Shown one piece after another: positions 30,244 through 43,270 of a stretch of DNA of 64,000 bases. This stretch comes from Salpingoeca rosetta (taxonomy: Eukaryota; Protista; Choanoflagellata): assembly GCA_033442325.1 (NCBI GenBank), contig JAWQFM010000024.1, positions 1,020,596 through 1,084,595 of the forward strand, written 5' to 3'. How positions within the stretch are numbered: the stretch's first letter is position 1; each line of letters begins with the position of its first letter. Both the position numbers and the translations under genes were made by a program. Under the pieces are notes generated by a model. The model ran no database searches, was not told the DNA's origin, and was given only the letters and a program-made list of their open reading frames with translations.

Positions 30244-33200
30244 TCACACGTCTGACTCCTGCGATGGCCCGACCTCTCTGTTTCTGCTCCGCTGTCGGGG
30301 AACACCGGCAGACGGTGGCTGCTGGCGAAGGAACTGGCTTGGCTTTGGACGCGCCTTGCTCGACTGCTGGGGCGAGTGTGGTGGGGAGATGCGTGGGAGC
30401 TTGTTCACGCCAGGGCTCAGACCGTTGATCTTGAGCGGGGGAGCAGAACGGCGATTGGCAAGAGAGCTGCTCGCTGTCGGTGCCGTTGTCGTCGTTGCTG
30501 CCAATGTGGATGGTGCGTCGCTTCGTTTGCCCGCACCCGCGCTGCTGTTGCTGCTGGCGCTTGTGTTGAAGAAGTCCGGGGTGGCGTTGAATGGCGCGTT
30601 TGCGGTTGTGCTGTCTGCGTCCGTGTCGCTGTTGTCGCTGTTGTCGTTGCTGCTGCTTAGACCAAGTACCCCAATTGCTCCGTCTTCGCTGCCTTCGCCG
30701 TTCCGGGTGGGGGAGGTGAACGTGGTGCAGGTGGTGGCAAATCCGGTCGCCGCCGCTGTTGTTGGCGTTGGCGGCGGCTTCTCCAGTGACAGACGCGCCA
30801 CAAACGCTGGCCGCGATGAGCGACGAATTGGTGTCAGCCCATGCATGTCCAGGCCATCAACGGAGTCTGTGTCGTCCGTCTTGCCTCCCTCGTCGCCTTC
30901 GTTGCTGTCTCTGGTGGTTGCGGGCTTGTCGCTGCTGGTGTTGGCGTCGTTGTCTGTCACGTCCACGTGCGGTACGCGTGGTTCGCTCTCCAAGGACAGC
31001 GCGTTTAGTTCCTCTTCAACCTGGTTGCGCGCCTTGTTTGAGGACAGGTCAAAACGCGTGGGCAGGGATTCCTCCACGAATTTCACAAACTGGGGCAGCA
31101 GGAAAAAGTCTTCCCAGTCACGCTCCTGCTTGCAGTTACGCAACACGCGCACAGAACAACGGAGGTGAGCAATTTAAACACGCATAAGAGCAGCACAATT
31201 GAACAGCAAAGTCAGAGAGACGTTCACAAACACACATACACACAGGCCCGCACACACACACACACATACACACACACAGGCACACGCATCCGTGCGGCTG
31301 TGGGCAGCATGTTGGTTGCCACACACCCTCTTGAGGGCGTTGAGGCAGCTGACGGTGCGGTCGATGCTCTTGGTCGTTTCAACTAAAGTCGACATGCGCG
31401 TGGGAGGAGAACATGCAGGCACACGCATGAGCACACGACAAAACGTTTCGACACTTGAGGCAATACATCTATACATCGTGCACCACGTCAACGTGTTGCA
31501 GCGCGTGTTGTTGTGTTCGGAACCTCACCGAAAATCTTTGCTTGTTCGAGATTGTCGGCTCCCGTCTTTCGCTTTGCGCACGTCTGTTGTTGTTCGTTGG
31601 GAAAGTGGGGGGGGGGGCGCAACAAACAGTCACAGTCCATGTTGCGGCGGGTGAGTGAGTGAGTGAGTGAGTGAGTGAGTGAGTGAGTGAGTGAGTGAGT
31701 GAGTGAGTGCGTGAGTGAGTGAGTGAGTGAGTGAGTGAGTGAGTGAGTGAGTGAGTGAGTGAGTGCGTGAGTGAGTGAGTGAGTGAGTGAGTGTATGTGT
31801 ACATAAGCGGCCAACCTTTGATCGTTCAATGGCAGTCATGAAAGAGCCGAGAAATGGAACAGCGCTCGAGCCAGCCGGAAGCGCTAATTGAGTCGTCCAG
31901 TAACCAAACACACACACACACACACACACAAAAACATGTGAGAAAAGTGCGAGCAAGACAAACACAGTTGCGTACGTGTGCGTGGGTGCGTGCATGCAAG
32001 CACAGGGAGTGGGACTGGTGGCTAACGTCTAGGATGGTGCAACCCACAACAGGGCTCACCTGTGATGCGGGCGAGGATGGTGTTGTACATGCCGTTGCCC
32101 GGATCAGCCAGAGGCGTGAGAGTCTTCTCGAACAGCGTCACGACATACGGCTGGTCTTTGGTGAGCCGCTTCCACGTGCGCTTCAGGCGTGACACCTGCA
32201 CACATCAGGTGACAGCGGAAGGTAACAAGCAAGCATTGCAGTGAGTAAGGGGGGGGGCAGGTAGCAAAGGGAGGGGTTGAGTGGGAGAGAAGAAGGAATG
32301 CCCATTCATGTTGAAACACAACCGGGCACACGTTCACACATGTTCAACCACAACCACACACACACACACACACACACACGTCCACACACGTCCACACATG
32401 TACTCGCACACACACATGTTTACAACAAACGCACGTGTGAGAGCTGGAGAGCGGTCATGACGGCCATGAATCCTTGAAAATCCAGCAGCGGCTCGCTCTG
32501 TCATCGAAATGCGTGCAAGTGTCAGAAGTGCAACGTTGCAATTGAAAAGAAGAGATGCATCGCTCCGACAGCAACACAGACACACACACACATATATCTG
32601 CTGTTTACACCCGTCCCTCTTAAAGGTCCCACAACAATTTGCGTTCGCTCTGTGCAGCACTTGGTCGTACCATGAGGTGGTGGGCGGTACGGATGAATTT
32701 TCCAAGCAGATGTGCGCGCTGAGCAGTGTTGCTGCGGCTCACAATGTTCTCAACAACCCAGTAGGTCACCTGTGGGTTCGGTGTGCACGCAAGTACCGCG
32801 CACACAAGCACGTGTATGGAGTGTGCACACATGGTTTGTGTTGGAGTGAGCGTAGCGAGAGGAAGAGCGATGGTGGGCGAAGGAGAAATGGGCAACAGCT
32901 ACCGGGTGAACGTACACTGACATAAGAGCAGGTACATGTATAGCAGCATGCACAGCCACACAACACCCACAGCCACACGCATGAGTGCAGCTGTGTTCAT
33001 GCACACATGTCCACGTTCACTCGCACCTGGTTTGCAAAGTGAATCATCTGTGTGCGGCACGCGCTCTGCGCATCAAAGAAATCTCTGATCTTGAACCTGA
33101 AGGCACGATGGTTGAGGGAGAATGACATGTTGCGTGAGGGTGTGAGTGGTTGGAACAGAGCAATGTGGGATGCACTTGAAAGCACAGGGGAACTGTGGCA

Positions 33201-42200: not shown

Positions 42201-43270
42201 TGTGCGCTTTTCTTACTTGTTGCAGACTTCCATGGCCTTCATGGACATCTGGGTTCGCTCCTCCCTGTTCTGTGCCCGTGCTTCCTGCAATTGGTTTCGC
42301 ACCAAATCGCAATGAGACATGAGGAGCTGGCACACACCCATCGCACCAAAGACGCGTGCAGACACAGACACACACACACATGCACACACATACACAGACA
42401 CATACACAGACAGACACACATACACACACACACACACACACAAACCACGCACGAGTTCAAAGAAGATGTCGACGGCCTCCACGAAGCACTCCTTGGCTTC
42501 CTCATAGTTCTCAAGAGCTTGGGCCTCTTCACCAGCAACGAGCAGCTCTGCTGCTTGCGCGCTCAGATCCGCTGTTGTTGGCACGACACGATAGCAAGGA
42601 AGCACGGGGCAGGGGGTGAGACGTGTCCAAGTTGCTTGACCAACTGCTGAGGGCTGAAGCAGCGATTTGTGTTGATGCCGGGGGCGACCTACCGAAGCGG
42701 ATGTTGTGGATGTCATTGAGGCGACTCTCCACTTCGTTCAGCTGCAGTTGCAGGCATTGTGAAGACAGAAGGAAACATGGTGAGGACGCTGTCTCGCCAA
42801 CGATGAGGATGTGCATGCACGCGTGCTTGCGTTCGTGTTATTGCGTGCGTGCGTGCGTGTATGTGCGTGCGTGTATGTGCGTGCATGTGTTTGCGTGCAT
42901 GTTTTTGCGTGTGTGTGGCTGCTCACAGCATGTACGTGTCATCGTGGGCACGTCGATGCAGATACACACACACACACACATGCACACATACATGCACACA
43001 CGTGCATGTACAGACCGTGGGCACGAGGGCGTCGCGGCGGTCAGCAGACTGCTCGCTAATCTGTTGCAGGCGCTCAAAGGCTGCCTGGAACAAATCCTCG
43101 GCCTCATCAACGTGGCCCTGGCTGTCGAGGACGCGCGCAAGCTGCACCAGCTCCAATGCACTGTGCTCCTCCTCCTCCAGCTCAAACGTGGCCAGCTGTG
43201 CCATGGTCAGGCGCTCCTGCCCAGCCAACGTGCCATCACCACCATCGCCCATCATGTCTTCGTCCATCAT
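30244..43270 (-). CDS. Large multidomain protein: tandem MIT-like helical domains, LRRs, P-loop GTPase-like domain, helical domain, REM and CDC25 RasGEF domain
   Basis: About 30 exons splice in phase from ATG 43270 to the stop at 30244. MIT-like: ALELVQLARVLDSQGHVDEAEDLF and AAELLVAGEEAQALENYEEAKECFVEAV. RI-type LRRs: LTLNLDFNSLGDEG, LSLKSNGLSEVG, LYNLDLQGNMIG. GTPase: NILLVGQRGVGKTSLIN, WDTTS, VVIINK|AD. REM: DAFFASY, MVQWFE. RasGEF: VTYWVVENIV, RAHLLGKFI, VSRLKRTW, VPFLG, EEELNALSLESEPR. Confidence 0.8.
31651..31792. repeat. (GTGA)n intronic microsatellite
   Basis: Seen directly. Confidence 0.95.
35020..35130. repeat. (CAA)n intronic microsatellite, (TTG)n on the sense strand
   Basis: Seen directly. 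Confidence 0.95.

Follow-up and report, generated by a model that had tools for sequence, protein, structure and literature searches.

Exchange factors with an internal G domain are rare; GbpC of Dictyostelium, the known example, uses a Roc-COR tandem. A sequence-only reading of 64,000 nucleotides of the Salpingoeca rosetta genome (contig JAWQFM010000024.1; this whole stretch is called the window here, and positions refer to it unless stated otherwise) claimed another such protein on the minus strand between 43270 and 30244, in the form of one polypeptide joining two MIT-like domains, leucine-rich repeats (LRRs), a P-loop domain, a helical region, a REM domain and a CDC25-type RasGEF domain. 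This raises the questions of whether a single gene carries all these parts, which kind of G domain it contains and whether its product could work as a guanine nucleotide exchange factor (GEF). The locus proved to be the gene PTSG_08492, and we consider it fairly probable that this one gene encodes a multidomain, regulated Ras-family exchange factor with the order MIT-MIT-LRR-septin-like G-helical-REM-like-CDC25.

Gene structure and colinearity of PTSG_08492

An exhaustive protein search with the 86 amino acids (aa) encoded by the exon at 37558-37815 retrieved a protein of 1698 aa (P0001) that was 100% identical to the query. This protein is S. rosetta PTSG_08492 (XP_004990741.1, EGD77397.1, UniProt F2UJU8), to which the databases give the names "hypothetical" or "Ras-GEF domain-containing protein" and nothing further. 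Placed on the minus strand, it matched letter for letter as 38 GT-AG exons (43270-30244) separated by 37 introns of 121-318 nucleotides (nt) each, with a median of 204 nt, in intron-dense DNA of about 54% G+C in which nearly all introns contain (TG)n-type microsatellites. Our own gene model, obtained by dynamic programming solely on GT-AG sites, reading phase and the codon usage of the locus itself, comprised 36 exons and 1685 aa (43267-30244) and was 89% identical to P0001. Both ends of the coding region given by the sequence-only reading were exact, and its estimate of about 30 exons was too low. Its description of the protein as previously undescribed holds for the literature and not for the databases: the gene model has been openly available since the genome of 2013, while a search by locus tag found no searchable paper that names PTSG_08492 in its main text, and a literature search for the MIT-LRR-G-RasGEF architecture returned nothing relevant. 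PTSG_08492 is uncharacterised, but already public as a gene model.

The claim of one polypeptide was upheld by full-length colinear homologues in two other choanoflagellates, S. kvevrii (1471 aa, P0006) and S. urceolata (1404 aa, P0018). Both carry the label 'ORF type:complete' in their EukProt headers, and we take them to be transcript-derived open reading frames (ORFs), judging from the TransDecoder format of these headers and from the nature of the data sets. In addition, the environmental contig L001 (6.4 kb) carried on a single strand, in this order, pieces of the LRRs, the G domain and REM, and the contig L002 (3 kb) contained the second MIT domain, the LRRs and the G domain within one uninterrupted ORF. 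Judged from these sequences, the architecture is conserved in colinear form in at least three choanoflagellate species.

With the same 86-aa exon, which belongs to the G domain, the exhaustive search returned 19 proteins at E<=0.001, of which the three Salpingoeca proteins, the protein of L002 and short environmental fragments are credible. No animal, fungal or bacterial protein was among them in a search of limited sensitivity, in which the S. urceolata orthologue itself reached only 4e-4. By this search the family is found solely in choanoflagellates and unassigned environmental contigs, and not across Holozoa; its absence outside choanoflagellates is provisional because a single-sequence query of 86 aa is insensitive. 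Apart from PTSG_08492, a word-indexed protein search yielded only one RasGEF and NLR-like proteins with LRRs; it missed both orthologues, so that it is uninformative on distribution.

CDC25 domain, REM-like region and helical region

Pfam assignments were judged against each family's own gathering cutoff (GA). RasGEF (PF00617) matched aa 1209-1364 of PTSG_08492 with 86.2 bits (GA 23.1) and the two orthologues with 96 and 104 bits. When a profile of the CDC25 domain was compared with the PDB, the best matches were SOS1 (1.3e-14), RalGPS1 (5e-14) and RasGRP2 (2.5e-13), followed by weaker matches to BCAR3 (5.7e-9) and SH2D3C (1.4e-7); a single CDC25 exon gave no match in the PDB. The VPFLG hairpin motif is encoded in exon 35 (31883-31816), and both this motif and NF-x-x-x-M-A-V are conserved across the orthologues.

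The REM-like region upstream is the weakest of the domain assignments and is moderately supported by sequence profiles and models. Pfam RasGEF_N was matched by the S. urceolata orthologue only, with E 0.011 and 16 bits (GA 28.3). By hhalign, a profile of the three orthologues was colinear with an unrelated RasGEF (P0029) at a probability of 98% over 333 columns, starting inside the RasGEF_N match of that protein, and in a Foldseek search with a low-confidence model the top matches were all REM-CDC25 structures, aligned over about 400 columns with a TM of about 0.25.

The helical region between the G domain and the REM-like region is conserved among the three full-length orthologues. No Pfam family, COR and DUF697 included, matched it at E<=10 either in P0001 or in the corresponding segments of P0006 and P0018, and the whole protein gave no COR match at E<=0.01 and no match to a kinase family. 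A bacterial-type GTPase plus DUF697 module was rejected on the same result, no DUF697 having been found after the G domain in the three orthologues.

A predicted septin-like G domain

The P-loop domain recognised from the letters alone was borne out and can be named more precisely. Its G1 motif, the P-loop GQRGVGKT, occupies aa 605-612 (38157-38134), and the G4 motif NKAD occupies aa 723-726, where it is interrupted by intron 17 (37563-37558 and 37330-37325); P-loop and NKxD are conserved across the family in the orthologue alignments. Pfam MMR_HSR1 matched aa 601-692 with 26.5 bits (GA 21.9). Pfam Septin (PF00735) reached a whole-protein score of 31.6 bits, above its GA of 26.2, yet no single stretch passed; the best stretch corresponded to profile positions 6-36 of 280, and the S. 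kvevrii protein remained under GA with 20.5 bits. Pfam Roc gave 22.1 bits, under its GA of 27.

Comparison of a family profile with the PDB placed septins first, with septin-11 at 7e-7 in an alignment that ran from G1 to beyond G4 and took in a segment of septin type, H-x-x-[WL]-Y-[IF]-I-x-x-P, as well as the xKAD-T context of G4; EngA/Der, YsxC, Era and Toc34 came next. The AlphaFold2 (AF2) model of the G domain, with a pLDDT of 70-89, was compared with known folds by VIA-align, which returned SEPT7 as the top match (Z 15.5, root-mean-square deviation 3.1, 203 residues aligned); septins made up four of the first five entries, and Z was 12.2 for the chains of LRRK1 and LRRK2. Foldseek with the same domain listed YsxC, Toc34, septins, GIMAP2 and IRG proteins. 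Neither a septin unique element nor a coiled coil was detected by Pfam or in the AF2 model, and what follows the G domain is predicted to be a helical bundle, without a septin match. On the sequence profiles and the model, the domain is best described as a septin-like member of the TRAFAC class that is neither Roc nor a septin proper, the latter because septin unique element and coiled coil were not found.

Two observations on this domain can be added. In P0002, encoded at 3363-4193 of contig L001, an arginine replaces the lysine of the P-loop (GQKGVGRS) and G3 reads DTKA; part of the family may therefore be entirely devoid of nucleotide binding. Moreover, intron 16 of PTSG_08492 (37816-38055, minus strand) is 240 nt long, in frame and free of stops, and with exons 16 and 17 it forms a single open frame of 313 codons (38340-37402). 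Its retention would not truncate the protein but would lengthen it by a Cys/Val repeat of 80 residues, placed between G1 and G3.

Tandem MIT domains and leucine-rich repeats

The first MIT domain passed its cutoff in S. rosetta, and exon 1 alone scored 24 bits against Pfam MIT. The second remained below the cutoff in this species (Table 1); a tandem MIT arrangement at the N terminus is nevertheless credible on sequence grounds, because the segment homologous to the second domain passed GA in two relatives, with 30.4 bits in P0006 and 36.0 bits in P0005. Exon 11 alone gave 24.3 bits with LRR_6. In general, single exons yielded Pfam hints of MIT, LRR_6 and a generic P-loop, and the REM and CDC25 exons were too short and gave no matches. 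Taken together, the order MIT-MIT-LRR-P-loop-helical-REM-CDC25 proposed from the sequence alone was confirmed, with Pfam scores above GA for MIT, LRR_6, MMR_HSR1, RasGEF and, as a whole-protein score, Septin, and with moderate support for REM.

The linker between the MIT domains and the LRRs had no Pfam match. Each of the two linkers that flank the LRRs holds one invariant motif in an otherwise unconserved context. These are FSFRxSTSL (aa 276-285, about 40927-40956, minus strand), of which S278, F279, S284 and L285 are invariant in the orthologue alignment, and RxxRxxS inside RRRSRSxSPS (aa 518-524, about 38932-38952, minus strand), of which R518, R521 and S524 are invariant. Both resemble basophilic kinase sites and could be regulatory phosphorylation or 14-3-3 sites.

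Alternative explanations

Several findings weigh against an active, regulated exchange factor made by a single gene. The hairpin residues aligned with SOS1 L938 and E942 are E and T in the family, and catalysis is not assured because of them. At the G3 position (DxxG) the S. rosetta protein reads DTTS (37782-37771), with loss of the glycine, and environmental fragments read DTKA or DTAA, while three orthologues (S. kvevrii, S. urceolata and contig L002) have kept DxxG; no conserved switch-I threonine is evident in the family alignments, and in S. rosetta the domain may be unable to hydrolyse GTP. The AF2 models of the helical region (Table 1) and of the REM-CDC25 arrangement (pLDDT 57 overall) are weak, their confidence being too low for a fold or an interface to be assigned, and the S. 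rosetta junctions of exons 18-19 and 24-25 are predicted from the mapping of P0001. The altered hairpin and G3 would suit a non-catalytic scaffold, in which the CDC25-like domain binds without exchange, as in BCAR3/NSP, the G domain is a pseudo-GTPase and the protein tethers partners at ESCRT-III sites; BCAR3 and SH2D3C do occur among the CDC25 profile matches, though as the weaker ones. Against a scaffold stand the best of these matches, which are active GEFs at about 1e-14, the conservation of the VPFLG and NF-type motifs, and the invariant P-loop and NKxD of the orthologue alignment, which argue for retained nucleotide binding. Positions equivalent to SOS1 L938/E942, position 938 among them, vary among active GEFs too. 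We regard the scaffold as unlikely.

A diverged ROCO protein, whose G domain and helical region would represent a degenerate Roc-COR tandem as in GbpC, draws on the LRRs directly N-terminal of the G domain with a RasGEF output downstream, on the weak Roc score and on the LRRK1 and LRRK2 chains among the fold matches. Yet Roc remained under its cutoff whereas MMR_HSR1 and, by its whole-protein score, Septin passed theirs, COR was missing even at E<=10 in three orthologues, septins led both the profile and the VIA-align searches with longer alignments (Z 15.5 for SEPT7 versus 12.2), and AF2 predicted the region after the G domain to be all-helical. ROCO membership was rejected on the Roc score, the lack of COR and the closer septins, the LRRs N-terminal of the G domain being a ROCO feature that PTSG_08492 does possess, and descent from a ROCO protein appears very improbable to us; the sequence-only reading had likewise seen neither a COR nor a kinase domain. 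Finally, neighbouring MIT-LRR-G and REM-CDC25 genes might have been merged by the gene predictor and by phase matching, a view to which the two predicted junctions and a helical region of no recognisable family between the halves lend something. Such a gene-fusion artefact is unlikely on sequence evidence because the whole architecture is colinear in the S. kvevrii and S. urceolata ORFs and partly so in L001 and L002, where a single strand of the former bears the G and REM pieces. Conservation extends to the helical region, and neither an in-frame stop nor a plausible start lies between the two halves of PTSG_08492. Small, probably RNA-derived assemblies contained 0.29-0.37 of the words sampled from 34200-40199, as against 0.295 expected from the exons alone and only 0.13-0.16 from either half of the gene, an indirect hint that both halves are needed to account for them. 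We therefore give an artefact hardly any weight.

Proposed mechanism and comparison with known systems

As a regulated exchange factor, PTSG_08492 would act through its CDC25 domain, which, braced by the REM-like region, would catalyse the release of nucleotide from a GTPase of the Ras family, be it Ras, Rap or Ral. The tandem MIT domains would direct the protein to membrane-bound ESCRT-III (CHMP) assemblies, and the LRRs may either bind a partner or, by folding back, autoinhibit the catalytic half. The internal G domain probably binds guanine nucleotide, because P-loop and NKxD are intact, and could serve as a slow or non-hydrolysing switch, or as a dimerisation module, that gates the REM-CDC25 GEF. 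Control of GEF output by the MIT, LRR or G domain, with Ras or Rap as the target, is what we infer from this architecture.

With GbpC and other ROCO proteins PTSG_08492 shares LRRs directly before an internal G domain, behind which come a helical or linker domain and then a signalling output, which in GbpC, too, includes REM-CDC25; the logic, in which an intramolecular G switch gates the output, is likely the same. The two differ in the G domain, septin-like here and Ras-like in Roc, in the absence of COR, kinase and cNB from PTSG_08492 and in its N-terminal tandem MIT. We thus view it as a probable functional analogue of the ROCO proteins (LRR-G-output) and not as a member of that family. A septin-like G domain in the place that Roc has in GbpC, behind LRRs, suggests that the design of sensor, internal G switch and output arose more than once.

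Septins, within the wider septin/Toc/AIG1-GIMAP/EngB TRAFAC group, are the best profile and fold matches from G1 to G4 and have in common with PTSG_08492 a septin-form motif after G3, H-x-x-W-Y-I-x-x-P against H-x-x-L-Y-F-I-x-P, and the xKAD-T context of G4. In contrast to septins, the G domain is embedded in a signalling protein of about 1700 aa, G4 reads NKAD instead of AKAD, no unique element or coiled coil was detected, the G3 glycine is lost in S. rosetta, and MMR_HSR1 also passes its cutoff, though Septin scores more bits. SOS, RasGRP and RalGPS resemble it in the RasGEF match of 86 bits, the VPFLG hairpin start, the NF-x-x-x-M-A-V motif and a putative REM-like segment upstream, and differ in the residues at SOS1 L938/E942 and in having DH-PH, C1, EF-hand or PH modules, none of which occurs in PTSG_08492. 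Like the tandem-MIT proteins Vta1/LIP5, calpain-7 and ULK3, it has two successive MIT three-helix bundles N-terminal to an enzyme. No MIT protein is known to us to have an output of the LRR, G-domain or RasGEF kind, and our literature searches were likewise empty; the tandem MIT hints that membrane remodelling by ESCRT-III is linked to Ras-family signalling, a link for which no described counterpart was found.

Expression in solitary and colonial cells

Expression of PTSG_08492 was taken from RNA-seq data that Fairclough et al. (2013; PMC4054682) give in supplementary tables, where the InterPro annotation of the gene consists of CDC25, TPR and Ras-GEF superfamily only. Three thecate samples showed 10.2, 89.6 and 81.2 FPKM (fragments per kilobase of transcript per million mapped reads) and swimmers 39.9 FPKM, compared with 0.23, 0.22, 1.58 and 1.91 FPKM in chain and rosette colonies; the log2 fold change between attached cells and colonies (Attach/Colony) was 6.275 (P 3.2e-28) (PMC4054682). 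These published tables show that the gene is expressed in solitary cells, both thecate and swimming, and is nearly silent in colonies. It is, in other words, a strongly solitary-cell-specific gene from the closest living relatives of animals.

This pattern allows a bolder and rather doubtful proposal, namely that choanoflagellates independently built a ROCO-like device in which a dimerising nucleotide switch of septin lineage, flanked by LRRs, couples ESCRT-III recognition by the tandem MIT domains to Ras/Rap activation, and which, given that its expression falls about 77-fold in rosettes and chains, might help to keep the solitary as opposed to the colonial state. The hypothesis is directly testable because S. 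rosetta can be edited.

The solitary-cell pattern is common to two genes of the window, the other being the Kir-domain gene PTSG_08486 (about 11257-11500), with read counts of 168, 93, 63 and 48 in thecate and swimmer samples and of 0, 13, 6 and 0 in colony samples (PMC4054682). PTSG_08491, a lipase gene that lies between them, does not show it.

Features of the locus

Table 1. Positions of PTSG_08492 and of its predicted parts in the window
Feature	Position	Strand	Residues and exons	Basis
PTSG_08492, whole coding region	30244..43270	-	1698 aa, 38 exons, 5097 nt with stop	exact mapping of P0001
MIT domain 1	42693..43162	-	aa 37-97, exons 1-2	Pfam MIT (PF04212) 33.0 bits, GA 30
Putative MIT domain 2	42027..42571	-	aa ~107-168, exons 3-5	Pfam MIT 21.6 bits in S. 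rosetta (GA 30)
Poorly conserved linker ending in FSFRxSTSL	40912..41826	-	exons 6-9	orthologue alignment
About five ribonuclease-inhibitor-type LRRs	39590..40605	-	aa 291-462, exons 10-12	Pfam LRR_6 34.5 bits, GA 23.4
Basic Ser-rich linker, then conserved helix into the G domain	38488..39329	-	exons 13-15	orthologue alignment; AF2 model helix 18-35
Predicted septin-like P-loop G domain	37186..38184	-	aa 596-772, exons 16-18	Pfam Septin/MMR_HSR1, profile versus PDB, VIA-align
Predicted all-helical region, ~255 aa	35193..36958	-	aa 773-1027, exons 19-24	AF2 long helices, pLDDT 45-69
REM-like (RasGEF_N) region	33719..34899	-	aa 1028-1175, exons 25-29	hhalign, Foldseek, weak Pfam
CDC25-homology RasGEF domain	31021..33440	-	aa 1176 to ~1440, exons 30-38	Pfam RasGEF, profile versus PDB
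S. rosetta-specific low-complexity Ser/Thr/Ala/Pro tail, ~260 aa	30244..31020	-	shares last exon with the end of CDC25	absent from P0006 and P0018

The C-terminal tail had no Pfam match. Among the intronic microsatellites, a CTG/CAG tract of 113 nt lies in the intron after exon 24 (35020-35132) and a (TG)n tract, also of 113 nt, in the intron after exon 18 (37063-37175). Long microsatellites are likewise present at 31650-31800 and 44100-44300, with TCAC-type repeats that translate as THSL runs.

Upstream of the start of PTSG_08492, a gene on the minus strand at 43524-44975 is represented by Lys/Ala/Thr-rich open frames with repeated acidic DD-[IL]-F-G-(D)n-I-F motifs. This frame stops some 250 nt short of the start codon of PTSG_08492, and its acidic motifs are reminiscent of LFa-type motifs.

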